Shown here piece by piece: positions 10,531 to 58,468 of a stretch of 64,000 bases of DNA. The notes under the pieces were generated by a model. It was given only the letters and a program-made list of their open reading frames with translations, searched no databases and was not told where the DNA came from. Position 1 is the stretch's first letter; each line of letters starts with the position of its first letter. The DNA lies in contig JAPDFW010000075.1 in assembly GCA_028826165.1 (NCBI GenBank), positions 124,001 to 188,000 on the forward strand, given 5' to 3'. A program made the position numbers and the translations under genes. Source of the stretch: Anaeramoeba ignava BMAN. Lineage: Eukaryota > Protista > Anaeramoebae.

Positions 10531-12288
10531 TTAATTTTGATTAATAAATTTTTTAATTAATAAATCAAATAAATTTGGATTTGTTTGATTTAATTGAAAA
10601 TAATCAATTCCAATTTTAATTTCATCAATTATTTCTTGTGTAATTTGAATTTCTTCTTTAATTTGATTTGAATAAATCCAATATTCAAATATTTGAAATG
10701 ATTTATTACTTAATTCACTATAATCTGTAACTTTATTTGATTTATCTTCAGTTACAGATAAAAACATTCCTCGATATAATTCACTTCTCATTATTAATAT
10801 TAATTTGGGAAATTTATATTGTTTTTCTTTTCTTTCAATTATAAAATCTTTTTCATTTTCATTTTCATTTAAATAAATTCTTTTCATTGTTTCTTCTATT
10901 TTTTCATTTGAATTTATAATTTCTTTAATTTCAGAATATAATTTTGGATTTATTATGGAATTATTTGAATAAATCATTTCAAATATTTGATTTGATTCTT
11001 TAATTGATTTATTTGAAATAATTTCTTCAAGTTTTTCATTTTGATTTTGATTTAATCTATATTTCAATATTAATTTATGAGCTTCAATTATTTCTCCATT
11101 TTTGGTTTTAAATGAAATATCACAAAATTCTTTTCTTCTAAATAGTTTTATCAAATCTTCTTCAAGATTAGAAAAAGAAGGAGAATAATAAAGAAATGAT
11201 CTATAAGCACCACAAGAAATATGATAATTGGAAATATTTTCATTAAATCTTAATTTAGGAAGTTCAATTTGAATTGGAATTGATTGATTATTTGTATCTC
11301 CATTTCCTAATTGACCATAATAATTACCTCCAAATGAAAATAGTTTTGAATTGGAAGTTAAAATCAAAGTATGGTAATGTCCAACAGAAAAATCAAGAAT
11401 ATCATTATTTTCAAATAAAGATGATTTGATTTCAGTAAATTCATAAATATCTCCATCTTTGCCAAGTCCATTAAATTTGTACTTTCCACATGAATAAAGT
11501 TTTCTTTTTGGATTTTGATTTTCATTTTCATCTTCAATCAACATTATTGAATGTTTATATCCACATTTAATATCAATTATTTTACCTTTTGGAATATTTT
11601 GAATTTTGGTTAATTTTTGGATTTTTGTTTCTTTTCTTCTTGATTCTCCTAATCCAAGTTGACCATGATAATTATCGCCAGATACAAATAATTCTTGATT
11701 TGAATTTAAAAGAAAAACAGATTTTGAAGTATTTCCTGAAAATATTTTAGAAATATTTTTCATCATTAAAATTCGTTTTTTTGTTTCTTTAAGTGTTTCA
11801 GAATCAAAACCAAATTGACCAAAATAATTTAATCCAATTCCATAAGCATTTCGATTTGAAGTTAATAAGTAAATTGAATCCCATCCAGGAACAATATCTT
11901 GAATTATTCTATCATTTGTATCTTCAATTAATGATGAAATATTGATAAATTCTTTTGAATTTTTTGGATTGATATATATTCCTTTGGCTAATACATTTCC
12001 TTCTTTTGTTAAAATAGCTTCATTTCCGAGACCAACAGTTACTTTTTGAATATTTTCTTTAATTTGGATTTTTTGAAGATTTTGTTTTGAATCTTCTTCG
12101 TCTAAATATTCTATTGCTTTTCCATTTTTAAAAAGGAAAATTGTTCCAAAATAACTTGAAAAAATTTGTTTAATTTGTTTTTCATTTTCATTTTCAAATT
12201 TAAATTGAATTGGTTTTGTTATTTTTTCTGGTTTATTTTTGATAAGTTTTGGTTTTAGATTTGAACCAAAAAATATAATTTCATTCAT
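10531..12288 (-). CDS. RCC1-repeat propeller + tandem BTB/POZ protein (array A)
   Basis: GxNxxGQLG and VG..HT RCC1 motifs; BTB motifs EFCDISF...AHKLIL and KDFII...FPKLILIMRSELYRGMF. Confidence 0.9.
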   Translation of the reverse strand: MNEIIFFGSNLKPKLIKNKPEKITKPIQFKFENENEKQIKQIFSSYFGTIFLFKNGKAIEYLDEEDSKQNLQKIQIKENIQKVTVGLGNEAILTKEGNVLAKGIYINPKNSKEFINISSLIEDTNDRIIQDIVPGWDSIYLLTSNRNAYGIGLNYFGQFGFDSETLKETKKRILMMKNISKIFSGNTSKSVFLLNSNQELFVSGDNYHGQLGLGESRRKETKIQKLTKIQNIPKGKIIDIKCGYKHSIMLIEDENENQNPKRKLYSCGKYKFNGLGKDGDIYEFTEIKSSLFENNDILDFSVGHYHTLILTSNSKLFSFGGNYYGQLGNGDTNNQSIPIQIELPKLRFNENISNYHISCGAYRSFLYYSPSFSNLEEDLIKLFRRKEFCDISFKTKNGEIIEAHKLILKYRLNQNQNEKLEEIISNKSIKESNQIFEMIYSNNSIINPKLYSEIKEIINSNEKIEETMKRIYLNENENEKDFIIERKEKQYKFPKLILIMRSELYRGMFLSVTEDKSNKVTDYSELSNKSFQIFEYWIYSNQIKEEIQITQEIIDEIKIGIDYFQLNQTNPNLFDLLIKKFINQN

Positions 12289-12537
12289 TTTTAAAAAGAA
12301 AAAAAATGAAAAAAATAATTTTGAATTTTAATTTTAATTTTGATTTTAATTTTAATTTTAATTTTAATTTTAATTTTAATTTTAATTTTTGATTTTGATT
12401 TTAATTTTAATTTTTATTTTAATTTTTATTTTTATTTTAATTTTAATTTTTGGAATTTTTAATTTTTGATTTTAATTTTAATTTTAATTTTAATTTTAAT
12501 TTTAATTTTAATTTTAATTTTAATTTTAATTTTAATT

Positions 12538-14331
12538 TTAATTATTAAATTTGTTAATTAATAAATCTAATAAATTTGGATTTGTTTGATTTAATTGAAA
12601 ATAATCAATTCCAATTTTAATTTCATCAATTATTTCTTGTGTAATTTGAATTTCTTCTTTAATTTGATTTGAATAAATCCAATATTCAAATATTTGAAAT
12701 GATTTATTACTTAATTCACTATAATCTTTAACTTTATTTGATTTATCTTCTGTTACAGATAAAAACATTCCTCGATATAATTCACTTCTCATTATTAATA
12801 TTAATTTAGGAAATTTATATTGTTTTTCTTTTCTTTCAATTATAAAATCTTTTTCATTTTCATTTTCATTTTCATTTAAATAAATTCTTTTCATTGTTTC
12901 TTCAATTTTTTCATTTGAATTTATAATTTCTTTAATTTCAGAATATAATATTGGATTTATTTTGGAATTGTTTGAATAAATCATTTCAAATATTTGATTT
13001 GATTCTTTAATTGATTTCTTTGAAATAATTTCTTTAATTTTTTCAATTTGATTTTCATTTTGATTTTGATTTAATCTATATTTCAATATTAATTTATGAG
13101 CTTCAATTATTTCTCCATTTTTGGTTTTAAATGAAATATCACAAAATTCTTTTCTTTTAAATAGTTTTATCAAATCTTCTTCAAGATTAGAAAAAGAAGG
13201 AGAATAAAGAAAGGATTTATCATGTCCACAAGAAACATGATAATTAGAAATATCTTCATTAAATCTTAATTTAGGAATTTCAATTTGAATTGGAATTGAT
13301 TGATATTCTTTTTTATTTCCAGTTCCTAATTGTCCATATAAATTATATCCAAATGAAAATAGTTTTGAATTGGAAGTTAAAATCAAAGTATGAGCATCTC
13401 CAACAGAAAAATCAAGAATATTATCATCATTTTCAAATAAAGATGATTTGATTTCAGTAAATTCATAAATATGCCCATCTTTGTCAAGTCCATTAAATAC
13501 AGAATTTCCACATGAATAAAGTTTTCTTTTTGGATTTTCATTTTCATTTTCATTTTCAATCAACATTATTGAATGATAATAACTGGATTGAATATCAATT
13601 ATTTTACCTTTTGGAATATTTTGGATTTTAGTTAATTTTTGGATTTTTGTTTCTTTTCTTGATTCTCCTAATCCAAGCTGTCCGTAAAAATTATATCCGC
13701 ATCCAAATAATTCTTGATTTGAATTTAAAAGAAAAACATGATCTGAATTAATTCCTGAAAATATTTTAGAAACATTTTTCATCATTAAAATTGGTTTTTC
13801 TGTTTTTTTAAGTGTTTCAGAATCAAAACCAAGTTGACCATATTCATTATCACCAATTCCATAAACATTTTGATTTGAAGTTAATAAATAAATTGAACTA
13901 GATCCAGAAACAATATCTTGAATTATTCTATCATTTGTATCTTCAATTAATGATGAAATATTGATAAATTCTTTTGGATTTTCTGTATTAATATTTCTTC
14001 CTTTTGCAAATACATTTCCTTCTATTGTTAAAATAGCTTCGTTATGAACACCAACAGTTACTTTTTGAATATTTTCTTTAATTTGAATTTTTTGAGGATT
14101 TTGATTTGAATATCTTAAATATTCTATTGCTTTTCCATTTTTAAAAAGGAAAATTGTTGATAAAAAACTTGATGAAATTTGTTTAATTTGTTTTTCATTT
14201 TCATTTTCATTTTCATTTTCATTTTCATTTTCATTTTCAAATTTAAATTGAATTGGTTTTGTTATTTTTTCTTGTTCATTTTTGATAAGTTTTGGTTCTT
14301 TATTTTGACCAAAAAATATAATTTCATTCAT
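12538..14331 (-). CDS. RCC1 + tandem BTB protein (array A)
   Basis: Intact paralogous ORF, 597 aa. Confidence 0.9.
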   Translation of the reverse strand: MNEIIFFGQNKEPKLIKNEQEKITKPIQFKFENENENENENENENEKQIKQISSSFLSTIFLFKNGKAIEYLRYSNQNPQKIQIKENIQKVTVGVHNEAILTIEGNVFAKGRNINTENPKEFINISSLIEDTNDRIIQDIVSGSSSIYLLTSNQNVYGIGDNEYGQLGFDSETLKKTEKPILMMKNVSKIFSGINSDHVFLLNSNQELFGCGYNFYGQLGLGESRKETKIQKLTKIQNIPKGKIIDIQSSYYHSIMLIENENENENPKRKLYSCGNSVFNGLDKDGHIYEFTEIKSSLFENDDNILDFSVGDAHTLILTSNSKLFSFGYNLYGQLGTGNKKEYQSIPIQIEIPKLRFNEDISNYHVSCGHDKSFLYSPSFSNLEEDLIKLFKRKEFCDISFKTKNGEIIEAHKLILKYRLNQNQNENQIEKIKEIISKKSIKESNQIFEMIYSNNSKINPILYSEIKEIINSNEKIEETMKRIYLNENENENEKDFIIERKEKQYKFPKLILIMRSELYRGMFLSVTEDKSNKVKDYSELSNKSFQIFEYWIYSNQIKEEIQITQEIIDEIKIGIDYFQLNQTNPNLLDLLINKFNN

Positions 14332-14555: not shown

Positions 14556-16343
14556 TTAATTTTGATTTTTAAATTTGTTAATTAATAAATCAAATAAATT
14601 TGGATTTGTTTGATTTAATTGAAAATAATCAATTCCAATTTGAATTTCTTCAATTATTTCTTGTGTAATTTGAATTCCTTCTTTAATTTGATTTGAATAA
14701 ATCCAATATTCAAATATTTGAAATGATTCTTCACTTAATTCACTATAATCTGTAACTTTATTTGATTTATCTTCTGTTACAGATAAAAACATTCCTCGAT
14801 ATAATTCACTTCTCATTATTAATATTAGTTTTGGAAATTTATATTGTTTTTCTTTTCTTTCAATTATAAAATCTTTTTCATTTTCATTTTCATTTTCATT
14901 TTCATTTTCTTTTTCATTTAAATAAATTCTTTTCATTGTTTCTTCTATTTTTTCATTTGAATTTATAATTTCTTTAATTTCAGAATATAATTTTGGATTT
15001 ATTTTGGAATTGTTTGAATAAATCATTTCAAATATTTGATTTGATTCTTTAATTGATTTATTTGAAATAATTTCTTCAAGTTTTTCAATTTGATTTTGAT
15101 TTAATCTATATTTCAATATTAATTTATGAGCTTCAATTATTTCTCCATTTTTGGTTTTAAATGAAATATCACAAAATTCTTTTCTTCTAAATAATTTTAT
15201 CAAATCTTCTTCAAGATTGGAAAAAGAAAGAGGAGAATAATAAAGAAATGATCTATAAGCACCACAAGAAATATGATAATTAGAAATATCTTCATTAAAT
15301 CTTAATTTAGGAAGTTCAATTTGAATTGGAATTGCTTGATTATTTGTATTTCCAGTTCCTAATTGACCTGAATCATTATTTCCAAATACTATCAATTTTG
15401 ATTTGGAAGTTAAAATCAAATTATGATATTGTCCACAAGAAATTTTAAGAATATCATCATCATTTTCAAATAAAGGTGATTTGATTTCAGTAAATATTTT
15501 TGTATCTTGAGCCTTGCCAAGTCCATTAGATTTATAATCTCCAGTTGAATAAAGTTTTCTTTTTGGATTTTCATTTTCATTTTCATTTTCAATCAACATT
15601 ATTGAATGATTAAATCCACCTTTAATATCAATTATTTTACCTTTTGGAATATTTTGGAATTTAGTTAATTTATAGACTTTTGCCTGTAGTATTGCTTCTT
15701 TTAATCCAAGTTGACCATGATAATTATATCCGCATCCAAATAATTCTTGATTTGAATTTAAAAGAAAAATGCAATCTGATGTATTTCCTGAAAATATTTT
15801 AGAAATATTTTTCATCATCAAAATTGGTTTTTCTGTTTTTTGAAGTGTTTCAGAATCAAAACCAAGTTGACCCCAATAATTATCACCAATTCCATAAACA
15901 TTTTGATTTGAAGTTAATAAATAAATTGAACTATCTCCAGAAATAACATCCTGAATTATTCTATCATTTTTATCTTCAATTAATGATGAAATATTGATAA
16001 ATTCTTTTGGATTTTTGTAATAAATATCTTTTCCTTTTGCAAATACATTTCCTTCTATTGTTAAAATAGCTTCATTTTCATGGCCAGCAGACACTTTTTG
16101 AATATTTTCAATTTGAATTTTTTTAGGATTTTGATTTGAATCTCTTAAATATTCTATTGCTTTTCCATTTTTAAAAAGGAAAATTGTTGCAAAAGGTCCT
16201 GATGAAATTTGTTTAATTTGTTTTTCATTTTCATTTTCATTTTCATTTTCAAATTTAAATTGAATTGGTTTTGTTATTTTATTTGGTTCATTTTTGAAAA
16301 GAATTGGATATTTATTTAAACCAAAAAATATAATTTCATTCAT
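14556..16343 (-). CDS. RCC1 + tandem BTB protein (array A)
   Basis: Intact paralogous ORF, 595 aa. Confidence 0.9.
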   Translation of the reverse strand: MNEIIFFGLNKYPILFKNEPNKITKPIQFKFENENENENEKQIKQISSGPFATIFLFKNGKAIEYLRDSNQNPKKIQIENIQKVSAGHENEAILTIEGNVFAKGKDIYYKNPKEFINISSLIEDKNDRIIQDVISGDSSIYLLTSNQNVYGIGDNYWGQLGFDSETLQKTEKPILMMKNISKIFSGNTSDCIFLLNSNQELFGCGYNYHGQLGLKEAILQAKVYKLTKFQNIPKGKIIDIKGGFNHSIMLIENENENENPKRKLYSTGDYKSNGLGKAQDTKIFTEIKSPLFENDDDILKISCGQYHNLILTSKSKLIVFGNNDSGQLGTGNTNNQAIPIQIELPKLRFNEDISNYHISCGAYRSFLYYSPLSFSNLEEDLIKLFRRKEFCDISFKTKNGEIIEAHKLILKYRLNQNQIEKLEEIISNKSIKESNQIFEMIYSNNSKINPKLYSEIKEIINSNEKIEETMKRIYLNEKENENENENENEKDFIIERKEKQYKFPKLILIMRSELYRGMFLSVTEDKSNKVTDYSELSEESFQIFEYWIYSNQIKEGIQITQEIIEEIQIGIDYFQLNQTNPNLFDLLINKFKNQN

Positions 16344-16394
16344 TTTTGAAAAGAAAAAAATGAAAAAAATGAAAAAAATGAAAAAATGAAAAAA

Positions 16395-18211: not shown

Positions 18212-20560
18212 ATGGATATTTGGAAAATTATTGAAAAAAATAATATTCAATTATTAAAAGAAGTTAATTTCAATACAAAAACAGATTTAAAACAAAATGC
18301 AAAACCTATTTTAAACTTTGCAATAGAAAAAAAAGTTTCAAAAGAAATTATTGAGTTTTTAATTAGAAAAGGAATAAATGTAAATTCATTTGATAATTTG
18401 GGAAGAAATGCGTTACATTTAGCTATTATGAACAATTCCGAAATGGAAATAATTGATTTACTAATTTCAAAAGTTGATGATATTAATGCTAAAACAAATC
18501 ACAATCAAACAGCTTTTCATTTTGCTTGCAAATATAGTTCATTTGCAATGATTAAATATTTAATTTCCAAGGGAATCGATATCAAAGCAAAATCAAATTA
18601 CAAAAACAAATCAGCTTTGCATTTTATTTGCGAACATCAAAATGAAAATTTGATTGAGATTATTGAATTACTAATTTCAAAAGGATTTGATGTTAATGAA
18701 AAAACAGACTATAATAAAACTGCTTTGCATTATGTTTGTGAAAATAAATCACCAAATTCGTATGAGGTTATTGAATTCTTAGTTTCAAAAGGGATTGATG
18801 TTAATGAAAAAACAGACTATAATAAAACTGCTTTGCATTATGCTTGTGAGACTCCAAATTTAAATTCTCTTCAAATTGTCAAGTATTTAGTTTTAAAAGG
18901 AGCTGATATTCATGTCAAAACCAATTCAAATGAAACTCCTTTGTATTATGCTTGTGAAAATCCAGATTCAAATTCTTTAGAAATTATCAAATATTTAGTT
19001 TTAAAAGGAGCTGATATTAATGAAAAAACCAATTCAAATCAAACAATTTTACATGAAATTTGCCGAAATCCAAATCCAAATTCTTTAGAAATTATCAAAT
19101 ATTTAGTTTCAAAAGGAGTTGATATTAATGCAAAAACAGACAACAATCAAACAATTTTACATGAAATTTGTCAATATCCAAATTCAAATTCTTTAGAAAT
19201 TATGGAATATTTAGTTTCAAAAGGAGTTGATATTAATGCAAAAACAAATCAAGACAAGACAGCTTTGCATATTGTTTGTGAATCACAAAATCTAAATAAT
19301 CAAAATCAAAATCAAAATCAAAATAATCAAAATCAAAATGCACTTGAAATTGTTAAATACTTGATTTCAAAAGGAATTGATATTAATACAATTTCAAATA
19401 ATAATGAAACAGCTTTGCATTGTGCTTGTTTAAATGAAAATCAAAATACACTTGAAATTGTTAAATACTTGATTTCAAAAGGAATTAATATTAATACAAA
19501 AACCAATAATAACGAAACAGCTTTGCACTTGATTTGCCAAATTCCAAGTGAAAAATATTCATATTTCCTTTTGAAAAATCAAAACCAAAATAAACTTGAA
19601 ATTGCTAAATACTTGATTTCAAAAGGAATTAATATTAATACAATGTCTAATACTAGTGATACAGCTTTGAATTATGCTTGCAAAAATAGCTTTGTTGAAT
19701 TTATCAAAATTTTATTGATGAATGATGCTAATGTGTTTCTTTTAAAAAAATACCAATTGAATAAAGAATTTCTCCATTTATTCTCTCAAATTTATTCAAT
19801 TAATCAAGATATGAATCAATTATTACATTCAAATGAAAATTTTTCAGATTTAACAATTCAATCCAATGATTCTTTCAAATTTCATGTTCACAAATTAATT
19901 CTTCTATCCAGATTGAATAATGATGATTCTATTGTGCAAAAATTGATCGGTATTTGTTTTCAAAAATCAAAAGAATATGTTGAATCAGCTTTAAATTTCC
20001 TTTATACAGGATTTGTTGATTTGGAAAAGCTTTATCAAACATTCCATCAAAATATTCCTGATTCTGATTTTTTTTACTTTGGAGATCACAATGATCCATT
20101 TTCAAAAGCTCTCAGATATGAAGAAAAGAAAGAAAAAGAGATAATTCAAGAATTTTTCAAAGAAATTGGATTTGATTCAAATTGGATTGAATTAAAAAAG
20201 GGAAGAAAAGGATTATTGAAAGATTTACACCAATTATTTCAACAAGAATCAACAAAGGATTTCAAAATAATTGTTGAAGAAAAAGAAATTAAAGTGCACA
20301 AATTAATTTTATTAGCAAGAAGTGAATTATTTAAAGGGATGTTCCAATTAAATATTTCAGATTCATCAAATCAGGTTCATAATTATTCAGAAAAATCATT
20401 TGAAACAATAAAGCAATTTATTTATTTTCTTTATCATGATGAATTTAATGAAGAAAAAAGAATTAATTTAAAAATGAAAGAAGAAATGAATGATTTACAA
20501 GATTTTTATCAATTAAATCCAAATTCAATAATAGGATTAATTTCAAAAGATTTCAAATAA
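18212..20560 (+). CDS. Ankyrin-repeat + tandem BTB/POZ protein
   Basis: More than 10 ankyrin repeats (TALHYAC..EIVKYLISKG.DIN), then FSDLTI...VHKLILLSRL and TKDFKIIV...VHKLILLARSELFKGMF. Confidence 0.92.
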   Translation: MDIWKIIEKNNIQLLKEVNFNTKTDLKQNAKPILNFAIEKKVSKEIIEFLIRKGINVNSFDNLGRNALHLAIMNNSEMEIIDLLISKVDDINAKTNHNQTAFHFACKYSSFAMIKYLISKGIDIKAKSNYKNKSALHFICEHQNENLIEIIELLISKGFDVNEKTDYNKTALHYVCENKSPNSYEVIEFLVSKGIDVNEKTDYNKTALHYACETPNLNSLQIVKYLVLKGADIHVKTNSNETPLYYACENPDSNSLEIIKYLVLKGADINEKTNSNQTILHEICRNPNPNSLEIIKYLVSKGVDINAKTDNNQTILHEICQYPNSNSLEIMEYLVSKGVDINAKTNQDKTALHIVCESQNLNNQNQNQNQNNQNQNALEIVKYLISKGIDINTISNNNETALHCACLNENQNTLEIVKYLISKGININTKTNNNETALHLICQIPSEKYSYFLLKNQNQNKLEIAKYLISKGININTMSNTSDTALNYACKNSFVEFIKILLMNDANVFLLKKYQLNKEFLHLFSQIYSINQDMNQLLHSNENFSDLTIQSNDSFKFHVHKLILLSRLNNDDSIVQKLIGICFQKSKEYVESALNFLYTGFVDLEKLYQTFHQNIPDSDFFYFGDHNDPFSKALRYEEKKEKEIIQEFFKEIGFDSNWIELKKGRKGLLKDLHQLFQQESTKDFKIIVEEKEIKVHKLILLARSELFKGMFQLNISDSSNQVHNYSEKSFETIKQFIYFLYHDEFNEEKRINLKMKEEMNDLQDFYQLNPNSIIGLISKDFK

Positions 20561-21608: not shown

Positions 21609-21677
21609 TTTAAAAATGAAAAATGAAAAATGAAAAAAATGAAAAAAAATTTTTTTATTAATTAATCAATTAAATTT

Positions 21678-24514: not shown

Positions 24515-26377
24515 TTAATTTTGATTATTAAATTTGTTAATTAATAAATCAATTAAATTTGGATTTGTTTGATTTAATTGAAAATAATCAATTCCAATTT
24601 GAATTTCATTAATCATTTCTTGTGTAATTTGAATTTCATCTTTAATTTGATTTGAATAAATCCAATATTCTAATATTTGAAATGATTTATTACTTAATTC
24701 ACTATAATCTGTAACTTTATTAGAAGTATCATTTGTTACAGATAAAAACATTCCTCGATATAATTCACTTCTCATTATTAATATTAATTTAGGAAATTTA
24801 TATTGTTTTTCTTTTCTTTCAATTATAAAATCTTTTTCATTTTCATTTTCATTTAAATAAATTCTTTTCATTGTTTCTTCAATTTTTTCATTTGAATTTA
24901 TAATTTCTTTAATTTCTAAATATAACTTTGGATTTATTATTTTGTTTGAATAAATCATTTCAAATATTTGATTTGATTCTTTAATTGATTTTTTTGAAAT
25001 AATTTCTTGAAGTTTTTCAATTTGATTTTCATTTTGATTTTGATTTTCATTTTGATTTTCATCTTTTAATCTATATTTCAATATTAATTTATGAGCTTCA
25101 ATTATTTCTCCATTTTCTGTTTTAAATGAAATATTACAAAATTCTTTTCTTCTAAATAGTTTTATCAAATCTTCTTCAAGATTGGAAAAAGAAGGAGAAG
25201 AATAATAAAGAAATGAATTGAAATATCCACAAGAAATATGATAATTAGAAATATTTTCATTAAATCTTAATTTAGGAATTTCAATTTGAATTGGAATTGA
25301 TTGATTATCTCTATCTCCAGTTCCTAATTGACCATATTCATTATATCCAAATACTATTAATTTTGATTTGGAAGTTAAAATCAAAGTATGAAAATTTCCA
25401 ACAGAAAAATCAATAATATTATCATTTTCAAATAAAGATGATTTGATTTCACTAAATTCATTTGTATCTCTATTTTTGCCAAGTCCATTCCATTGATAAT
25501 CTCCACATGAATAAAGTTTTCTTTTTGGATTTTGATTTTGATCTTCATTTTGATTTTGATTTTGATCATTTTGATTTTGATTTTGATTTTTATTTTGATT
25601 TTCATATTCATTTTGATTTTCAATCAACATTATTGAATGATAAAATCCAGATTGAATATCAATTATTTTGCCTTTTGGAATATTTTGGATTTTGGTTAAT
25701 TCTTGGATTTTTGTTTCTTTTCTTCTTGATTCTCCTAATCCAAGTTGGCCATAATTGTTGTTTCCAGATACAAATAATTCTTGATTTGAATTTAAAATAA
25801 AAACATGATTTGAAGTATTTCCTGAAAATATTTTAGAAACATTTTTCATCATTAAAATTGGTTTTTCTGTTTTTTTTAGTGTTTCAGAATCACAACCAAG
25901 TTGACCAAAATTATTTAAACCAATTCCATAAGCATTTTGATTTGAAGTTAATAAGTAAATTGAACCAATTCCAGAAACAATATCTTGAATTATTCTATCA
26001 TTTATATCTTCAATTAATGATGAAATATTGATAAATTCTTTTGAATTTTTTGGATTAATATTATTTCCTTTGGCAAATACATTTCCTTCTATTGTTAAAA
26101 TAGCTTCATTTTGATAACCAACAGCTACTTTTTGAATATTTTTAATTTGAATTTTTGAAGGATTTTGTTTTGAATATCTTGAATATTCTATTGCTTTTCC
26201 ATTTTTAAAAAGGAAAATTGTTGAAAAGAAACCTGTTGAAATTTGTTTAATTTGTTTTTCATTTTCATTTTCATTTTCATTTTCAAATTTAAATTGAATT
26301 GATTTTGTTATTTTATCTGTTTCATTTTTGATAAGTTTTGGATAATCATTTAAACCAAAAAATAAACAATCATTCAT
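24515..26377 (-). CDS. RCC1 + tandem BTB protein (array B)
   Basis: Intact ORF, 620 aa. Confidence 0.9.
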   Translation of the reverse strand: MNDCLFFGLNDYPKLIKNETDKITKSIQFKFENENENENEKQIKQISTGFFSTIFLFKNGKAIEYSRYSKQNPSKIQIKNIQKVAVGYQNEAILTIEGNVFAKGNNINPKNSKEFINISSLIEDINDRIIQDIVSGIGSIYLLTSNQNAYGIGLNNFGQLGCDSETLKKTEKPILMMKNVSKIFSGNTSNHVFILNSNQELFVSGNNNYGQLGLGESRRKETKIQELTKIQNIPKGKIIDIQSGFYHSIMLIENQNEYENQNKNQNQNQNDQNQNQNEDQNQNPKRKLYSCGDYQWNGLGKNRDTNEFSEIKSSLFENDNIIDFSVGNFHTLILTSKSKLIVFGYNEYGQLGTGDRDNQSIPIQIEIPKLRFNENISNYHISCGYFNSFLYYSSPSFSNLEEDLIKLFRRKEFCNISFKTENGEIIEAHKLILKYRLKDENQNENQNQNENQIEKLQEIISKKSIKESNQIFEMIYSNKIINPKLYLEIKEIINSNEKIEETMKRIYLNENENEKDFIIERKEKQYKFPKLILIMRSELYRGMFLSVTNDTSNKVTDYSELSNKSFQILEYWIYSNQIKDEIQITQEMINEIQIGIDYFQLNQTNPNLIDLLINKFNNQN

Positions 26378-26764: not shown

Positions 26765-28597
26765 TTAATTTTGATTATTAAATTTGTTAATTAATAAATC
26801 AAATAAATTTGGATTTGTTTGATTTAATTGAAAATAATCAATTCCTGTTTCTAATTCATCAATTATTTCTTTTGTAATTTGAATTCCATCTTTAATTTGA
26901 TTTGAATAAATCCAATATTCAAATATTTGAAATGATTTATTACTTAATTCACTATAATCTGTAACTTTATTAGAAGTATCTTCAGTAACAGATAAAAACA
27001 TTCCTCGATATAATTCACTTCTCATTATTAATATTAATTTTGGAAATTTATATTGTTTTTCTTTTCTTTCAATTATAAAATCTTTTTCATTTTCATTTTC
27101 ATTTTCATTTAAATAAATTCTTTTCATTGTTTCTTCAATTTTTTCATTTGAATTTATAATTTCTTTAATTTCTAAATATAATTTTGGATTTATTATTTTG
27201 TTTGAATAAATCATTTCAAATATTTGATTAGATTCTTTAATTGATTTTTTTGAAATAATTTCTTGAAGTTTTTCAATTTGATTTTCATTTTGATTTAATC
27301 TATATTTCAATATTAATTTATGAGCTTTGATTATTTCTCCATTTTCTGTTTTAAATGAAATATTACAAAATTCTTTTCTTCTAAATAGTTTTATCAAATC
27401 TTCTTCAAGATTGGAAAAAGAAGATGAAAGAGAAGGAGAATAATAAAAAAATGATGTTGAATATCCACAAGAAATATGATAATTAGAAATATTTTCATTA
27501 AATATTAATTTAGGAATTTCAATTTGAATTGGAATAAATTGATATTTTGTATTTCCATTTCCTAATTGACCATGTTCATTACTTCCAAATACTATTAGTT
27601 TTGAATTGGAAGTTAAAACCAAAGTATGAGATTCACCAACAGAAATATCAAGAATAATATTATCATCATCATTTTCAAATAAAGATGATTCGATTTCAGT
27701 AAATTCATCAGTATGTTGAATTTTATCAAGTCCATTATAATGATAATATCCACATGAATAAAGTTTTCTTTTTGGATTTTGATTTTGATTTTGATTTTGA
27801 TTTTGATCTTCATTTTGATTTTCATTTTGATTTTCATTTTCGATCATCATTATTGAATGAAAATTTCCACATTGAATATCAATTATTTTGCCTTTTGGAA
27901 TATTTTTAATTTTGGTTAATTTATGAATTTTTGTTTCTTCTCTTCTTGATTTTCCTAATCCAAGTTGACCATAATTGTTATTTCCGCATCCAAATAATTC
28001 TTGATTTAAATTTAAAAGAAAAACAGAATATGAAGAATTTCCTGAAAATATTTTAGAAATATTTTCCATTATTAAAATTGGTTTTTCTGTTTTTTTAAGT
28101 GCTTCAGAATCTAAACCAAGTTGACCAGAAGAATTTGAACCAATTCCATAAACATACTGGTTTGAAGTTAATAAGTAAACTGAATTAGCTCCAGAAACAA
28201 TATCTTGAATTATTCTATCGTTTATATCTTCAATTAATGATGAAATATTGATAAATTTATTTGGATTATTTGGATTAATATCTTTTCCTTTGGCAAATAC
28301 ATTTCCTTCTATTGTTAAAATAGCTTCATTTCCAACACCAACAGTTACTTTTTGAATATTTTCTTCAATTTGGACTTTTTCAGATTTTTGTTTTGAATTA
28401 TTTAAATATTCTATTGCTTTTCCATTTTCAAAAAGGAAAATTGTTCCAAAGTAACCTGTTGAAATTTGTTTAATTTGTTTTTCATTTTCATTTTCATTTT
28501 CAAATTTAAATTAAATTGGCTTTTTTATTATTTTTTCTGGTTCATTTTTGATAAGTTTTGGATATTTATTTCTTCCAAAAAATAAACAATCATTCAT
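26765..28597 (-). pseudogene. RCC1 + tandem BTB paralogue with an in-frame TAA at codon 29 (28513-28511)
   Basis: ATG 28597 (MNDCLFFG) is in frame with ORF 26765-28069. The conserved PIQFKF reads CCA ATT TAA TTT AAA. This could be a base-call error. Confidence 0.7.
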
Positions 28598-28876
28598 TTT
28601 TAAAAAAGAAAAAAAATGAAAAAAATGAAAAATGAAATTTTGATTTTAATTTTAATTTTAATTTTAATTTTAATTTTAATTTTAATTTTGATTTTGATTT
28701 TAATTTTGATTTTAATTTTGATTTTGATTTTAATTAAAAAATTAAACATTTTTCTTTCTTTTCTTTCTTTCTTTTGAATTTGAATTTGATTTTGATTTTG
28801 ATTTTGAATTTGATTTTGATTTTGAATTTGAATTTGAATTTTAATTTTGATTTTAATTTTAATTTTAATTTTAATT

Positions 28877-41616: not shown

Positions 41617-43441
41617 ATGAATGAAATTATATTTTTTGGTTTAAATGATTATCCAAAACTTATCAAAAATAAACCAGATAAAATAACAAAACCAATTCAA
41701 TTTAAATTTGAAAATGAAAATGAAAATGAAAATGAAAATGAAAATGAAAAACAAATTAAACAAATTTCAACAGGAATTTTTTCAACAATTTTCCTTTTTG
41801 AAAATGGAAAAGCAATAGAATATTTAGATGAAAAATTCAAAACAAAATCCTTCAAAAATCCAAATTGAAGAAAATATTCAAAAAGTAACTGTTGGTCGTT
41901 ATAATGAAGCTATTTTAACAATAGAAGGAAATGTATTTGCCAAAGGAAAAGATATTAATCCAAATAATTCAAAAGAATTTATCAATATTTCATCATTAAT
42001 TGAAGATAAAAATGATAGAATAATTCAAGATATTGTTTCTGGAGCTAATTCAATTTATTTATTAACTTCAAATCAAAATGCTTATGGAATTGGATTAAAT
42101 GAAGATGGTCAACTTGGTTTTGATTTTAAAACACTTTATAAAACAGAAAAACCAATTTTAATGATGAAAAATGTTTCTAAAATATTTTCAGGAAATACTT
42201 CAAATCATGTTATTCTTTTAAATTCAAATCAAGAATTATTTGGATGTGGTGGTAATTTATTTGGTCAACTTGGATTAGGAGAATCAATAAAAGATTGGCG
42301 AATCCAAAAAATAACTCAAATCCAAAATATTCCAAAAGGCAAAATAATTGATATTCAATGTGGAGAAACTTTTTCAATAATGCTGATTGAAAATGAAGAT
42401 GAAAATGAAAATCCAAAAAGAAAACTTTATTCATGTGGAAGTAATCAATATAATGGACTTGGAAAAGATGAAGATGAAAATACTTATGAATTTACTGAAA
42501 TCAAATCATCTTTATTTGAAAATGATGATGATAATATTCTTGATTTTTCTGTTGGAAGACAACATACTTTGATTTTAACATCCAATTCAAAATTAATAGT
42601 ATTTGGAAGTAATTCTTATGGTGAATTAGGAACTGGAGATAGAATAAATGATCAAAGAATTCCATTTCAAATTGAAATTCCTGAATTAAGATTTAATGAA
42701 GATATTTCCAATTATCATGTTTCTTGTGGTGGCCACAAATCATTTATTTATTATTCTCCTTCTTCTTTTTCCAATCTTGAAGAAGATTTGATAAAATTAT
42801 TTGAAAGAAAAGAATTTTGTGATATTTCATTTAAAACCGAAAATGGAGAAATAATTGAAGCTCATAAATTAATATTGAAATATAGATTAAATCAAAATCA
42901 AAATCAAAATCAAAATCAAATTGAAAAACTTCAAGAAATTATTTCAAAAAAATCAATTAAAGAATCAAATCAAATATTTGAAATGATTTATTCAAATAAT
43001 TCCAAAATAAATCCAAAATTATATTCTGAAATTAAAGAAATTATAAATTCAAATGAAAAAATTGAAGAAACAATGAAAAGAATTTATTTAAATGAAAATG
43101 AAAATGAAAATGAAAAAGATTTTATAATTGAAAGAAAAGAAAAACAATATAAATTTCCAAAATTAATATTAATAATGAGAAGTGAATTATATCGAGGAAT
43201 GTTTTTATCTGTAACAGAAGATAAATCAAATAAAGTTACAGATTATAGTGAATTAAGTAATAAATCATTTCAAATATTTGAATATTGGATTTATTCAAAT
43301 CAAATTAAAGATGAAATTCAAATTACACAAGAAATAATTAAAGAAATTCAAAGAGGAATTGATTATTTTCAATTAAATCAAACAAATCCAAATTTATTTG
43401 ATTTATTAATTAACAAATTTAATAATCAAAATCAAAATTAA
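41617..43441 (+). CDS. RCC1 + tandem BTB protein (array C), one frameshift near 41830
   Basis: ORFs 41617-41868 and 41828-43441 join across an A-run indel. Confidence 0.85.
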
Positions 43442-43788: not shown

Positions 43789-45574
43789 ATGAATGAAATT
43801 ATATTTTTTGGTGAAAATCAAAATCCAAAACTTATCAAAAATGAACCAGAAATAATAATAAAACCAATTCAATTTAAATTTGAAAATGAAAATGAAAATG
43901 AAAATGAAAATGAAAAACAAATTAAACAAATTGCAACAGGTTATTTATCAACAATTTTCCTTTTTAAAAATGGAAAAGCAATAGAATACTTAAATGAAAA
44001 AGATTCAAAACAAAATCCTTCAAAAATCCAAATTGAAGAAAATATTCAAAAAGTAACTGTTGGTTATCAAAATGAAGCTATTTTAACAAAAGAAGGAAAT
44101 GTATTTGCCAAAGGATATAATATTAATCCAAAAAATCCAAAAGAATTTATCAATATTTCATCATTAATTGAAGATATAAACGATAGAATAATTCAAGATA
44201 ATGTTTCTGGAGCTAATTCAATTTATTTATTAACTTCAAATCAAAATGCTTATGGAATTGGTTCAAATGAATATGGTCAACTTGGTTTTGATTCTGAAAC
44301 ACTTCAAAAAACAGAAAAACCAATTTTAATGATGAAAAATGTTTCTAAAATATTTTCAGGAAATTCTTCATTTAATGTTTTTCTTTTAAATTCAAATCAA
44401 GAATTATTTGTATGCGGAAATAATGAATTTGAACAACTTGGATTAGGAGAATCAATAACAGAACAAGAAGAAACAAAAATCCATAAATTAACCAAAATCC
44501 AAAATATTCCAAAAGGCAAAATAATTGATATTCAATCTGGAAGTGCTCATTCAATAATGTTGATTGAAAATGAAAATCAAAATGAAAATCCAAAAAGAAA
44601 ACTTTATTCATGTGGAAATTATTTTGTCAATGGACTTGGCAATTATCGAGAAGATACTTATGAATTTACTGAAATCAAATCATCTTTATTTGAAAATGAT
44701 GATAATATTCTTGATTTTTCTGTTGGAAATTCTCATACTTTGATTTTAACATCCAATTCAAAATTAATTGGATTTGGATATAATGATTCAGGTCAATTAG
44801 GAATTGGAGATACAAATAATCAATTAATTCCAATTCAAATTGAACTTCCTAAATTAAGATTTAATGAAAATATTCCTAATTACCATATTTATTGTGGATT
44901 TTCCAGATCATTTCTTTATTATTCTCCTCTTTCTTTTTCCAATCTTGAAGAAGATTTGATAAAAATATTTAGAAGAAAAGAATTTTGTAATATTTCATTT
45001 AAAACCAAAAATGGAGAAATAATTGAAGCTCATAAATTAATATTGAAATATAGATTAAAAGATGAAAATCAAATTGATAAACTTCAAGAAATTATTTCAA
45101 AAATCAATTAAAGAATCAAATCAAATATTTGAAATGATTTATTCAAATAATTCCAAAATAAATCCAAAATTATATTCTGAAATTAAAGAAATTATAAATT
45201 CAAATGAAAAAATTGAAGAAACAATGAAAAGAATTTATTTAAATGAAAATGAAAAAGATTTTATTATTGAAAGAAAAGAAAAGAAATATAAATTTCCAAA
45301 ATTAATATTAATAATGAGAAGTGAATTATATCGAGGAATGTTTTTATCTGTAACAGAAGATAAATCAAATAAAGTTACAGATTATAGTGAATTAAGTAAT
45401 AAATCATTTGAAATATTTGAATATTGGATTTATTCAAATCAAATTAAAGATGAAATTGAAATTACAAAAGAAATAATTGATGAAATTCAAATTGGAATTG
45501 ATTATTTTCAATTAAATCAAACAAATCCAAATTTATTTGATTTATTAATTAACAAATTTAATAATCAGAATTAA
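43789..45574 (+). CDS. RCC1 + tandem BTB protein (array C), one frameshift near 45100
   Basis: ORFs 43789-45111 and 45062-45574 join; the A-run in ISKKS is shortened. Confidence 0.85.
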
Positions 45575-46255: not shown

Positions 46256-46305
46256 TCACCATCATGAAAAAAAAAATTATTTTTTTCATTTTTTTCTTTT
46301 CAAAA

Positions 46306-48126
46306 ATGAATGAAATTATATTCTTTGGTGAAAATAAATATCCAAAACTTATCAAAAATGAACCAGAAATAATAACAAAACCAATTCAATTTAAATTTGA
46401 AAATGAAAATCAAAATCAAAATGAAAATGAAAATGAAAATGAAAATGAAAAACAAATTAAACAAATTGCAACAGGTTTTTTTTCAACAATTTTCCTTTTT
46501 GAAAATGGAAAAGCAATAGAATACTTAAATGAAAGAGATTCAAAACAAAATCCTTCAAAAATCCAAATTGAAGAAAATATTCAAAAAGTAACTGTTGGTC
46601 ATCAAAATGAAGCTATTTTAACAAAAGAAGGAAATGTATTTGCCAAAGGATATAATATTAATCCAAAAAATACAAAAGAATTTACCAATATTTCATCATT
46701 AATTGAAGATAAAAACGATAGAATAATTGAAGATAATGTTTCTGGAGCTAATTCAATTTATTTATTAACTTCAAATCAAAATGTTTATGGAATTGGTTCA
46801 AATGAATATGGTCAACTTGGTTTTGATTCTGAAACACTTCAAAAAACAGAAAAACCAATTTTAATGATGAAAAATGTTTCTAAAATATTTTCAGGAAATT
46901 CTTCATTTAATGTTTTTCTTTTAAATTCAAATCAAGAATTATTTGTATGCGGAAATAATGAATTTGAACAACTTGGATTAGGGGAATCAATAACAGAACA
47001 AGAAGAAACAAAAATCCATAAATTAACCAAAATCCAAAATATTCCAAAAGGTAAAATAATTGATATTCAATCTGGAAGTGCTCATTCAATAATGTTGATT
47101 GAAAATGAAAATCAAAATGAAAATCAAAATGAAAATCCAAAAAGAAAACTTTATTCATGTGGAAATTATTTTGTCAATGGACTTGGCAATTATCGAGAAG
47201 ATACTTATGAATTTACTGAAATCAAATCATCTTTATTTGAAAATGATGATAATATTATTGATTTTTCTGTTGGAAATTCTCATACTTTGATTTTAACTTC
47301 CAATTCAAAATTAATTGGATTTGGATATAATGAATTTGGTCAATTAGGAACTGGAGATACAAACGATCAATTAATTCCAATTCAAATTGAACTTCCTGAA
47401 TTAAGATTTAATGAAAATATTTCTAATTATCATATTTATTGTGGATTTTCCAGATCATTTCTTTATTATTCTCCTCTTTCTTTTTCCAATCTTGAAGAAG
47501 ATTTGATAAAATTATTTGAAAGAAAAGAATTTTGTAATATTTCATTTAAAACAGAAAATGGAGAAATAATTGAAGCTCATAAATTAATATTGAAATATAG
47601 ATTAAATCAAATTGAAAATCAAATTGAAAAACTTAAAGAAATTATTTCAAAAAAATCAATTAAAGAATCAAATCAAATATTTGAAATGATTTATTCAAAT
47701 AATTCCAAAATAAATCCAAAATTATATTCCGAAATTAAAGAAATTATAAATTCAAATGAAAAAATAGAAGAAACAATGAAAAGAATTTATTTAAATGAAA
47801 ATGAAAAAGATTTTATTATTGAAAGAAAAGAAAAACAATATAAATTTCCAAAATTAATATTAATAATGAGAAGTGAATTATATCGAGGAATGTTTTTATC
47901 TGTAACAGAAGATAAATCAAATAAAGTTACAGATTATAGTGAATTAAGTAATAAATCATTTCAAATATTTGAATATTGGATTTATTCAAATCAAATTAAA
48001 GATGAAATTCAAATTACAAAAGAAATAATTAATGAAATTCAAATTGGAATTGATTATTTTCAATTAAATCAAACAAATCCAAATTTATTTGATTTATTAA
48101 TTAACAAATTTAATAATCAGAATTAA
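46306..48126 (+). CDS. RCC1 + tandem BTB protein (array C)
   Basis: The true start is MNEIIFFG at 46306, as in the paralogues; intact. Confidence 0.9.
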   Translation: MNEIIFFGENKYPKLIKNEPEIITKPIQFKFENENQNQNENENENENEKQIKQIATGFFSTIFLFENGKAIEYLNERDSKQNPSKIQIEENIQKVTVGHQNEAILTKEGNVFAKGYNINPKNTKEFTNISSLIEDKNDRIIEDNVSGANSIYLLTSNQNVYGIGSNEYGQLGFDSETLQKTEKPILMMKNVSKIFSGNSSFNVFLLNSNQELFVCGNNEFEQLGLGESITEQEETKIHKLTKIQNIPKGKIIDIQSGSAHSIMLIENENQNENQNENPKRKLYSCGNYFVNGLGNYREDTYEFTEIKSSLFENDDNIIDFSVGNSHTLILTSNSKLIGFGYNEFGQLGTGDTNDQLIPIQIELPELRFNENISNYHIYCGFSRSFLYYSPLSFSNLEEDLIKLFERKEFCNISFKTENGEIIEAHKLILKYRLNQIENQIEKLKEIISKKSIKESNQIFEMIYSNNSKINPKLYSEIKEIINSNEKIEETMKRIYLNENEKDFIIERKEKQYKFPKLILIMRSELYRGMFLSVTEDKSNKVTDYSELSNKSFQIFEYWIYSNQIKDEIQITKEIINEIQIGIDYFQLNQTNPNLFDLLINKFNNQN

Positions 48127-52100: not shown

Positions 52101-53219
52101 GTAACGGCTGCAGGGAAATATCCACCGGCAATTGTGATGATAATTGGAGCAGGCGTTGCTGGACTTGGTGCCATCGGAACTGCCAAGAATCTCGGCGCGA
52201 TTGTGCGAGCTTTCGACACACGGCCGGTTGTTAAAGAGCAAGTTGAGTCAATGGGCGGCGAGTTTCTTGAGCTTGATTTCAAAGAAGACGGAACAGGCGT
52301 TGGCGGTTATGCCAAAGTTATGAGCGAAGAATTTATCGCAGCTGAAATGAGACTTTTTGCGCAGCAAGCTAGAGAGGTCGACATCATCATCACAACAGCG
52401 CAGATCCCTGGCCGTAAAGCTCCCTTGTTGATCAAGAAGGAACATGTGGATGTGATGAAGAAAGGCTCAGTTATCGTTGATATGGCTGCGCAATCCGGTG
52501 GGAATTGTGAAGTCACACGCCCAGGAGAAATCTACAAATACAACGGTGTTACCGTCATTGGCCTCACTGATCTTCCCTCTAAACTCTCCACTCAATCCTC
52601 TCAAATGTACGCTACAAATCTTCTCAATCTCATGGAAGAAATGGGGAACGCCAAAAACTTCACATTTGATTTGGAAAATGAAATCATTGACGGCATGTGT
52701 GTTTCTCACAACGGTACTCTTCGTTGGCCAAAACCAAAGCCACCAACACCAGCACCAGCTCCTGAACCTGAGAAGAAGTCTGGTCCAGATGTTCCACCTT
52801 CACCTCAACCGCCTGCTATTAAACAAAAAAAACCCAAGTCACTCGGTCGCAAAATTTTCGACACAACTCTTTTCTGGCTTATCGCAATAGCCATCTTCTC
52901 CCTCATCGGCATTTACGCTCCAGACTCCTTCCTTCCACATCTTGGTATCCTCGCTCTCGCTTGTGTTGTCGGTTGGACTCTTGTTTGGGGTGTTGCTGCT
53001 GCTCTTCATACTCCTCTTATGTCCGTTACTAACGCCATTTCAGGTATCGTTATTTTAGGCGGAATGACCCTTGTTTCCAATCAGGCTTATACTCACCAAA
53101 GTACTCTTCTTGCTGCCTTTTCTATCTTTGTTGCTTCCATTAATATTGCTGGTGGTTTTCTTGTTACCCAGAAAATGTTGCTCATGTTCAAGACAGAAGA
53201 AAAGGTTATTGCTAATTGA
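49147..53219 (+). CDS. NNT: Proton-translocating NAD(P)+ transhydrogenase, single-chain beta-linker-alpha fusion (introns 49198-49367 and 49422-50136; start unresolved)
   Basis: Spliced N-terminus SDALQGLTETINILAALLFIFSLYGLRHQETSKKGNFYGMGGM matches the PntB start; beta/dIII motifs GADMPVV, PGYGMAV, HPVAGRLPGHMNV, GANDTVNP; alpha/dI motifs RAQKLDALSSM, GAGVAGL, TAQIPG; dII motif LHTPLMSVTNAISG. Confidence 0.93.
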
Positions 53220-54860: not shown

Positions 54861-54906
54861 ATTATTTAAAAATCAAAATTTTATTTTCATTTTTTTCTTT
54901 TTAAAA

Positions 54907-56475
54907 ATGAATGAAATTTTATTTTTTGGTGAAAATGAATATCCAATTCTTATCAAATCAGAAAGAATAACAAAACCAATTCCAATTCAATTTGAAAATG
55001 AAAATGAAAATGAAAATGAAAATGAAAATGAAAATGAAAATGAAAATGAAAATGAAAATGAAAATGAAAATGAAAATGAAAAACAAATTAAACAAATTTC
55101 ATCAGGACCTTTTGCAACAATTTTCCTTTTTGAAAATGGAAAAGCAATAGAATATTTAAATGAAAATGAACCAAATCAAAATCCTCAAAAAATCCAAATT
55201 GAAGAAAATATTCAAAAAGTAACTGTTGGTTTTTATAATGAAGCTATTTTAACAATAGAAGGAAATGTATTTGCCAAAGGAGAAGATATTAATCCAAAAA
55301 ATCCAAAAGAATTTATCAATATTTCATCATTAATTGAAGATAAAAATGATAGAATAATTCAAAATATTGTTTCTGGAGCTAGTTCAATTTATTTATTAAC
55401 TTCAAATCAAAATGCTTATGGAATTGGTTTAAATCAATATGGTCAACTTGGTTTTGATTCTAAAACACTTGAAAAAACAGAAAAACCAATTTTAATGATG
55501 AAAAATGTTTTTAAATTCAATATTTTTTTTTTTTTCAAATTATTGGTAAAACGAATATAACTTGCATTAGGAAAATCAAGAAAAAGAAAAAAAATCTTTA
55601 TAAATTGATATTCAATGCGGATATTTTTAATAATAATTTTGAAAATGAAATTTTCCAAAAAGAAAACTTTATTCATTATTTATTTATAATGGATTTTAAA
55701 AATAAAGATATTTATGAATTTATTTCAAATCATCTTTATTTGAAAATCTTATTATTATTTTTATTTAAAATTGATTTTTATTTTATTCAATTCAAAACTA
55801 TTTTTATTAATTTTAAATTTAATTTTAAAGGTTTCTAATTTAATAATGAAATTTTTAATTATCATGTTCTTCTTTTTCTTTATTATTCTCCTTTCTTTTC
55901 TAATCTTGAAGAAGATTTGATAAAATTATTTAAAAATATTTTATGATATTTCATTTAAAACAGAAAATAAAAATTTAAATTAATTTTGAAATATAGATTA
56001 AATCAAAATCAAAATCAAAATGAAAATTGAAAAACTTCAAGAAATTATTTCAAATAAATCAATTAAATAATTAATTTCAAAAATTTTAAATGATTTATTC
56101 AAACAATTCCAAAATAAATCCAAAATTATATTCTGAAATTAAAGAAATTATAAATTTAAATGAAAAAATTGAAGAAACAATGAAAAGAATTTATTTAAAT
56201 GAAAATGAAAAAATTTTTAATTGAAAGAAATGAAAAACAATAATTTCCCAAATTAATATTAATAATGAGAATTTATAGAGGAATGTTTTAATTTTAACAG
56301 AAATAAATATTAAATTATTATAGTTTATTAATAATAAAATTTTAAAATATTTGAATTTAAAATTCAAAAAATAAAAATGGAATTTTCAGAAATTTTAAAG
56401 AAATTTTTTGATTTTCAAAAATGAAATCAAACAAATTTTTTATTTTTTGGTTTAAATAAACAAATTTAATAATTA
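54907..56475 (+). pseudogene. RCC1 + BTB paralogue, intact to ~55510 then degenerate
   Basis: The first ~200 codons are typical; the remainder keeps recognisable fragments (AATCTTGAAGAAGATTTG, GAAGAAACAATGAAAAG) amid deletions and stops. Confidence 0.7.
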
Positions 56476-56559
56476 AAATCAAAATTAAAATTAAAAATCA
56501 AATTAAAATTAAAATTAAAAAATTCAAAAATTTATTTTTCATTTTTTTTCTTTTCAAAA

Positions 56560-58468
56560 ATGAATGAAATTTTATTTTTTGGTTTAAATAAATATCCAAT
56601 TCTTATCAAAAATAAACCAAAAAGAATAATAAAACCAATTCAATTTAAATTTGAAAATGAAAATGAAAATGAAAATGAAAATGAAAATGAAAATGAAAAT
56701 GAAAACAACAGGAAATTATTCAACAATTTTCCTTTTTAAAAATGGAAAAGCAATAGAATATTTAAATGAAAATGAAAATGATGAAGATGATGATGATGAC
56801 GAAAATGAAGATGATGAAGATGATGATGAAGATGATGAAGATGAAAATGAAAATGAAAATGAAAATGAAAATGAAAATGAAAATGAAAATGGAAATGAAA
56901 ATGAAAATGGAAATAGAAATGAAAATCAATATCTAAAACAACCTGAAAAAATTCAAATTGAAAATATTCAAAAAGTAATTGTTGGTTATCAAAATGAAGC
57001 TATTTTAACAAAAGAAGGAAATGTATTTGCTAAAGGAGAAGATATTAATCCAAATAATCCAAAAGAATTTATCAATATTTCATCATTAATTGAAGATACA
57101 AATGATAGAATAATTCAAGATATTGTTTCTGGATTTAGTTCAATTTACTTATTAACTTCAAATCAAAATGCTTATGGAATTGGTTCAAATGAATATGCTC
57201 AACTTGGTTTTGATTCTAAAACACTTCCAAAAACAAAAAAACCAATTTTAATGATGAAAAATGTTTCTAAAATATTTTCAGGAAATTCTTCAAATCATGT
57301 TTTTCTTTTAAATTCAAATCAAGAATTATTTGGATGTGGTGATAATCAATATGGTCGAATTGGATTAGAAAAATCAAGAAGATATATCGAAAAATTAACC
57401 AAAATCCAAAATATTCCAAAAGGCAAAATAATTGATATTCAATGTGGATTTTATCATTCAATAATGTTGATTGAATATGAAAATGAAAATCCAAAAAGAA
57501 AACTTTATTCATGTGGAATATATGAATATAATGGACTTGGCAAAGATGAAGAATATACTTATGAATTTACTGAAATCAAATCATCTTTATTTGAAAATGA
57601 TGATAATATTCTTGATTTTTCTGTTGGAGATGCTCATACTTTGATTTTAACTGAAAAAAGAAAATTAATTGGATTTGGAGAAAATGAATATGGCCAATTA
57701 GGAAATGGAAATACAGATTATCAATCAATTCCAATTCAAATTGAACTTCCTGAATTAAGATTTAATGAAGATATTTCCAATTATCATGTTTCTTGTGGTG
57801 AAAGTAGATCATTTATTTATTATTCTCCTTCTTTTTCCAATCTTGAAGAAGATTTGATAAAATTATTTGAAAGAAAAGAATTTTGTGATATTTCATTTAA
57901 AACAGAAAATGGAGAAATAATTGAAGCTCATAAATTAATATTGAAATATAGATTAAATCAGAATCAAAAAGAAATTGGAAAACTTAAAGAAATTATTTCA
58001 AAAAAATCAATTAAAGAATCAAATCAAATATTTGAAATGATTTATTCAAACAGAATAATAAATCCAAAATTATATTCAGAAATTAAAGAAATTATAAATT
58101 CCAATGAAAAAATTGAAGAAACAATGAAAAGAATTTATTTAAATGAAAAAGAAAAAGATTTTATAATTGAAAGAAAAGAAAAACAATATAAATTTCCTAA
58201 ATTAATATTAATAATGAGAAGTGAATTATATCGAGGAATGTTTTTATCTGTAACAAATGATACTTCTAATAAAGTTACAGATTATAGTGAATTAAGTAAT
58301 AAATCATTTCAAATATTTGAATATTGGATTTATTCAAATCAAATTAAAGATGAAATTGAAATTACACAAGAAATCATTAATGAAATTAAAATTGGAATTG
58401 ATTATTTTCAATTAAATCAAACAAATCCAAATTTATTTGATTTATTAATTAAGAAATTTAATAATTAA
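56560..58468 (+). CDS. RCC1 + tandem BTB protein (array D) with an acidic insertion; frameshifting deletion near 56705
   Basis: ATG 56560 MNEILFFG; the KQIKQIS segment is partly deleted; D/E/N-rich insert at ~56770-56930; the rest is intact. Confidence 0.8.

Follow-up and report, generated by a model that had tools for sequence, protein, structure and literature searches.

The genome of Anaeramoeba ignava BMAN, an anaerobic amoeba of the metamonads in which sulfate-reducing bacteria live inside a membrane network, carries about 1,070 to 1,210 copies of a gene encoding an RCC1 propeller followed by two BTB domains, with extreme variation at a small set of propeller loop positions. The anatomy of the family, its copy number, its site-specific hypervariability, the purifying selection on its scaffold and the frequent exchange between its copies are established by the results below. 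In explanation we propose, at even chances, that the proteins are CUL3 substrate receptors whose variable face would bind fast-evolving foreign proteins, gene conversion homogenising the framework and reshuffling the loops. A fuller version of the proposal is more tentative, and we regard it as possible rather than probable: an expressed germline repertoire of several hundred to a thousand antibody-like receptors, reshuffled by conversion, coupled to CUL3 and directed against symbiont, prey or virus proteins, with a prenylated subset at the symbiosome or phagosome membrane.

The analysis started from a 64,000-nucleotide stretch of contig 76 (positions 124001-188000; here called the window) in the assembly of 42,843,398 bases and 147 contigs. 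An earlier note on this DNA had counted 12 genes; we found 12 RCC1-BTB-BTB loci between window positions 10531 and 58468, but only seven are intact ORFs; of the others, one is cut by a premature stop, three contain a single frameshift each and one is decayed. Copy 1 (10531..12288, 585 aa), which supplies the reference numbering used here, copy 2 (12538..14331, 597 aa), copy 3 (14556..16343, 595 aa), copy 4 (24515..26377, 620 aa) and copy 6 (28877..30691, 604 aa) are intact and lie on the minus strand, and a CaaX-coding tail is stranded beyond the stop of copy 6 (28734..28756, minus strand). Copy 5 (26765..28597, minus strand) is full length, with a premature TAA at 28513-28511. The remaining copies are on the plus strand. 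Copy 7 (39486..41345, 619 aa), which has a polybasic C-terminus ending in a CaaX sequence (CLIF), and copy 10 (46306..48126, 606 aa) are intact, and single frameshifts interrupt copy 8 (41617..43441) near codon 70, copy 9 (43789..45574) near 45100 in an A run, and copy 12 (56560..58468) near codon 43 in an EN microsatellite. Copy 12 also has an acidic insertion past strand C of blade 1. Copy 11 (54907..56290) is open for ~200 codons at its start and decayed in the rest, with many deletions. Copies 9 and 10 have most of their variable loops in common, presumably as a result of recent duplication or conversion. At 18212..20560, the plus strand encodes a protein with ankyrin repeats whose BTB-BTB tail is homologous to that of the family (30% identity).

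Across the genome, a BTB2 DNA motif of the family gave 1,214 matches and a blade-2 motif 1,071, with none for the reversed controls. With every locus counted, the family occupies ~2 Mb, roughly 5% of the 42.8-Mb genome, and its loci amount to ~7% of the 14,759 CDS reported for A. ignava BMAN (PMC11550330, Table S1). The copies are intronless and form short tandem arrays spread over many contigs. Of the loci sampled, about half contain an intact ORF and the other half are broken in the assembly; the breaks are mostly indels of 1-2 bases and in-frame stops are very rare, suggesting that many of the broken loci are long-read assembly errors. An alternative genetic code was ruled out by the full ORFs under the standard code, and an assembly duplication artefact by the distance between copies (~18%) and by loop combinations that are all different in the 138 proteins sampled (138/138). 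No transposon or retrocopy ends were seen at the genes, which are flanked by a pyrimidine-rich leader and an AAAATT microsatellite. All named close homologues of the window copies are A. ignava proteins. The same architecture occurs in A. flamelloides at only about 27-31% identity, suggesting that the architecture is older and the expanded clade specific to A. ignava, and the expansion is presumably young. The motif counts, the broken copies and the distance of the A. flamelloides relatives together describe a large expansion, lineage-specific and accompanied by gene turnover. Transcriptomes are not the source of any of the top 120 homologues, while two divergent relatives do derive from transcriptomes.

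The results that follow are based on a DNA sample of 39 CDS, weighted to contigs 1, 2 and 76, and on a protein sample of 138 family members, weighted to the copies nearest copy 1. Pfam returned an RCC1-like domain (PF25390, 201 bits over a cut-off of 150) and two BTB stretches. The AF2 model (pLDDT 88.8) shows seven four-stranded blades with RCC1 closure, and the propeller matches the RCC1 domains of HERC2, RPGR and UVR8, with a Foldseek TM of 0.8 to the HERC2 RLD. We defined hypervariable sites as alignment columns with an entropy of 2.2 bits or more among the 138 proteins. All 34 of these columns are located in residues 1-370, and none is found among the 217 BTB columns. Mean pairwise identity in the 39 CDS is 19% at hypervariable sites, compared with 83% for the propeller framework and 92% for the BTB half, the copies being ~82% identical overall. 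The BTB half, described earlier as almost invariant, is indeed so, and the framework too shows high conservation. The dipeptides listed as differing between copies were likewise present in the intact window copies (e.g. LG, VH, HE, YQ, FQ and FK before NEA).

Mapped on the AF2 model, the variable sites are clustered, not scattered: each is part of, or adjoins, an A-B loop (46-47, 87-88, 136-137, 187-189, 244-245, 304-305 and 361-362) or a C-D loop (9-12, 21, 63, 104, 155-156, 167, 205-208, 221, 269-271, 278, 321-323 and 333-336). Since the A-B and C-D connections lie at the same end of a four-stranded meander, the hypervariable sites likely form one face of the propeller, whereas the B-C turns on the opposite side are constant (entropy 0.46 vs 2.86). 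By the same topology, the chain would pass from strand B of blade 7 into the BTB tail and do so on the constant side. The variable pair of the G-xx-HT motif aligns to the W and R of the UVR8 GWRHT motif, which take part in photoreception and dimer contacts (PMC5108777). Aromatic residues make up 35% of the variable sites vs 10% elsewhere, and the sites are rich in Tyr and Phe, a composition that resembles that of a paratope. Both observations agree with the suggestion that the loops form a ligand-binding surface, and a natural variable-binder scaffold with ~30 sites on the putative RCC1 face is thereby mapped.

The copies recombine frequently, on a scale of ~10-30 nt, a feature that is new here. 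The family tree is star-like, with internal branches making up 15%, and r2 is 0.115 at distances below 10 bases and has fallen to the background level by about 30 bases (PHI-like test, p = 5e-4). Close pairs differ mostly by alleles that are present in other paralogues. Near the genes, we saw no template, cassette, repeat structure or base-specific mutation signature. The family had been called antibody-like, a description that suits the pattern of variation; no signature of somatic diversification was seen.

We evaluated selection with our own implementations of the codon models, not PAML. The M2a model improved on M1a by 2dL = 617, with an omega of 4.2 on 7% of sites, and M8 improved on M8a by 2dL 342, with 31 sites of posterior >0.95 and none in the tail. 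The scaffold is under purifying selection, with an omega of about 0.07, and M0 on the BTB part only gave 0.09. The signal of the standard site tests is therefore strongly positive and confined to the propeller, but it is confounded. Null simulations with recombination and without positive selection reached a 2dL of 186-273 and an omega of 2.5-3.0 in six fitted runs, indicating that the M2a test is inflated although the observed 617 lies above that range, and we gave up reading M2a and M8 at face value. A tree-free mixture test gave 2dL = 88 vs at most 2 in its two fitted null simulations, and with doublet and triplet changes allowed 2dL was still 393, the doublets improving the fit. A class of omega 1 whose overall rate is faster fitted as well as or better than a class with omega >1, and the variable codons alone gave an omega of 1.0-1.7. 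Silent heterozygosity was 0.27 at bases adjacent to a variable codon vs 0.08 elsewhere (p = 6e-5, an optimistic value since the site set was defined by repeat position after the entropies were known), and four-fold silent sites at least two bases from variable codons were at the background level (0.08). A dN/dS above 1 is thus not cleanly established, because recombination and the raised local silent rate confound the site tests.

Model-free evidence nevertheless favours selection. Replacement change at the variable codons is ~3.9 times as fast as background silent change would predict. Tyr and Ile account for 20% and 2% of the variable sites, respectively, vs the 12% and 22% predicted by AT-biased neutrality, and stops are nearly absent from the variable codons, about 10% being expected per saturated codon. 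At least three alleles occur at 48 of 56 loop bases, compared to 3 of 82 silent sites. We therefore consider it very probable that diversifying selection acts on the variable sites.

The same data were weighed against genomic drift, in which an easily duplicated cassette would spread with its loops unconstrained or locally mutable and with most copies idle, as argued for plant F-box genes (PMC3030570). The false positives that recombination alone produces in site tests, the equal fit of rate-class models, the raised silent diversity next to variable codons and the many loci that look broken are all in keeping with drift. Strong constraint on the scaffold, variation limited to one loop face, a composition far from the neutral expectation, the near absence of in-frame stops and the excess of multi-allelic loop bases are not, and we consider drift improbable. 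A dedicated mechanism that mutates or templates exactly the variable codons, with selection afterwards, would explain the silent excess at the adjoining base and the better fit with doublet changes. Yet the excess is gone two bases away, as it would be with ordinary multi-nucleotide mutations or tight linkage carried by selection, the genes have neither a base-specific signature nor a template or repeat structure nearby, and the differences within close pairs are mostly alleles of other paralogues; we hold targeted diversification to be slightly less probable still than drift.

The BTB half folds with a pLDDT of 90, and its best fold match is the tethered Miz1-BCL6 POZ dimer (186 residues, Z 15.2; SPOP, Z 9.5); in the model, the tandem BTB is an intramolecular pseudo-dimer. 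Because the best match is a transcription-factor POZ dimer, the fold alone is no proof of a ligase role. The adjacent tandem BTBs of RhoBTB, for which an intramolecular dimer was proposed, bind CUL3 (PMC1257465). A BTB fold in its long form is present (Pfam PF00651; fold match), BTB1 being truncated and BTB2 complete, and among the best PDB matches to the BTB2 sequence are the CUL3 adaptors KBTBD4, SPOP and KBTBD2. The protein stops after the last BTB core helix and aligns only to SPOP 177-297, so that 3-box or BACK helices are absent. The 3-box is critical for high-affinity CUL3 binding but not essential for weak binding (PMC4447969). The phi-x-E motif is degenerate in BTB2, with T-(E/N)-D vs L-K-E in KBTBD4, and is missing from BTB1; the acidic position D515 is nearly invariant, divergent relatives included. 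We found a CUL3 orthologue in the genome (C58 cullin, 428 bits to CUL3 vs 363) with intact N-terminal helices, the part of cullins that binds BTB domains in other species. The genome also has CUL2- and CUL4-like cullins and RBX1-like genes (zf-rbx1 matches). Given the CUL3 orthologue and the adaptor-like BTB2, but no 3-box and a degenerate phi-x-E motif, CUL3 binding by the tail is only plausible on sequence grounds.

A CaaX end (CLIF, CSIF or CFIF) follows a mostly basic tail in 20 of the 138 proteins (14%), a subset newly noticed here. Prenyltransferase genes are present in the A. ignava genome, and with the basic tail and CaaX end this makes it likely that the subset is anchored at the cytosolic side of membranes. 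A role as secreted effectors was ruled out, the proteins being devoid of a hydrophobic N-terminus, signal peptide or membrane segment. The homologous BTB-BTB tail also occurs with other heads, namely the ankyrins of the protein mentioned above and the armadillo-annotated heads of proteins called 'aardvark', and a first look with Pfam BTB returned 3,711 candidates in the genome.

It is possible, though on balance we doubt it, that the proteins are variable binders working independently of CUL3, with the two BTBs serving as a stalk or docking elsewhere and foreign proteins being blocked or sequestered instead of ubiquitinated. The missing 3-box, the degenerate phi-x-E motif and the truncated BTB1 would fit such a role, many of the matched BTB folds are not CUL3 adaptors, and the searches turned up one CUL3-like gene but thousands of BTB candidates. 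A tail freed from CUL3 is harder to reconcile with a D515 that is nearly invariant even among divergent relatives, with CUL3 adaptors as the closest sequence matches of BTB2, or with IBTK, which still binds CUL3 weakly without its 3-box region (PMC4447969). An internal arms race, in which the receptors would face selfish elements resident in the amoeba's genome (inteins, transposons, drive genes or toxin genes), could draw on the many inteins of Anaeramoeba genomes (PMC10710043) and on the failure to find an NCLDV capsid gene in the assembly, a search that lacked a positive control and is uninformative. However, a set of ~1,100 different faces implies targets that are many and diverse, and the CaaX subset points to membranes, and we rate such an arms race as improbable as drift.

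We therefore return to CUL3-coupled reception of foreign proteins as the preferred reading. The ~1,100 proteins would be cytosolic binders in which one face of the seven-blade RCC1 propeller, made of ~30 A-B and C-D loop residues, is the variable binding site, and the conserved BTB pseudo-dimer would leave the propeller from the opposite side. BTB2 would dock on the CUL3 orthologue, and each paralogue would then serve a cullin-RING ligase as substrate receptor. The targets may be foreign proteins that change fast, such as virus proteins or the effectors of bacteria that are ingested, symbiotic or parasitic; new binding faces would be retained by selection, with gene conversion homogenising the framework and mixing the loops. 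The CaaX subset might act at membranes, for example at the phagosome or symbiosome, and the ankyrin protein at 18212-20560 may carry a different recognition head on the same stalk. For the little-understood recognition of intracellular microbes by protists, the family offers a culturable, concrete case, and the proposal extends the long-standing idea of diversified cullin adaptors as intracellular immune receptors to a single-celled metamonad that has a bacterial symbiosome.

The family may be likened to the F-box and MATH-BTB families of nematodes and plants, in which positive selection affects the substrate-binding and not the cullin-binding domain, according to a passage of PMC4334554 citing Thomas 2006. 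Those expansions, as described there, are also large birth-death families of cullin adaptors in which a variable substrate-binding domain sits on a conserved cullin-binding one, and a role in protection from foreign proteins has been proposed for them. In contrast, the A. ignava proteins carry an RCC1 propeller as their head, their host is single-celled, the 3-box is lacking, and the copies are ~82% identical and recombining, with variation limited to ~30 periodic sites. In IBTK, a CRL3 receptor that binds CUL3 through its tandem BTBs, and in S. pombe Btb1 (ANK-RCC1-BTB-BTB), RCC1 repeats are likewise followed by two BTB domains (PMC4447969). Some A. ignava copies are annotated at source as 'btk-binding protein-related'. 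However, IBTK has ankyrins, a 3-box and a long substrate-binding C-terminal region, all of which the A. ignava family lacks, and the architecture thus speaks against orthology to IBTK/Btb1. To our knowledge, IBTK does not form an expanded or hypervariable family.

RCBTB1 and RCBTB2 combine an N-terminal RCC1 propeller with a C-terminal BTB in about 550 aa and gave weak matches (24-28%); they are conserved low-copy genes with a single BTB. RhoBTB differs from the A. ignava family by its GTPase head, helical C-terminal tail and few copies; a CaaX tail is present in RhoBTB3. In its main text, the genome paper does not use the terms BTB, RCC1, cullin or ubiquitin, and the family was not found in its searchable supplements; the A. 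pumila preprint does not describe it either, within a literature coverage that is incomplete. UVR8 and other RCC1-like domains share the propeller fold with the A. ignava proteins, but the GWRHT residues that are conserved in UVR8 are the most variable ones in A. ignava.

An ankyrin-repeat protein encoded at 18212-20560 (+) carries the same tandem BTB tail as the RCC1-BTB-BTB family, and the ankyrin head on this shared tail suggests a broader modular system in which varied heads are mounted on a single stalk. Three tandem genes at 2964-10451 (+), the third of which is split into two ORFs, each combine an F-box-like motif at the N-terminus with a multi-pass membrane region. These genes are a further putative cullin-adaptor type adjoining the RCC1-BTB-BTB array. 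The cullin genes of A. ignava themselves appear to be duplicated (loci L031 on contig 64, L035 on contig 109, L037/L038 on contig 57, as well as L032 and L036): apart from L032 and L036, the set comprises a pair of CUL4-like loci that are almost identical and a tandem pair of CUL1-like loci.

Copy 1 of the array (10531-12288, -) has a near-twin on the same contig, L002 (C76:21975-23762), which lies in reverse orientation at a distance of about 112 kb. The two loci are 95% identical and have common flanks; their differences are grouped in patches, as would be expected from gene conversion. An RCC1 and BTB protein of 800 aa (P0300) was also observed in a transcriptome of Arcella intermedia.

A Protozoan SRP RNA gene (39152-39401, +; Rfam RF01856, 74.8 bits) lies immediately upstream of copy 7, and the stop of a vWA-domain exon (16395-17252, -; domain match) is located approximately 50 bases upstream of copy 3. 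Domain matches also identified an Ndc1 nucleoporin homologue (33969-35786, -) and an NAD(P) transhydrogenase with fused beta and alpha parts (50034-53219, +), the gene for which has a GC content of 32-44% compared to 20% for the genome. Further genes are a Sin3-like gene in several ORFs (59037-62816, +), with PAH and Sin3a_C domains, and an ankyrin and kinase-like gene (21240-24070, -) whose pieces lie in several frames, which may reflect introns or breaks.
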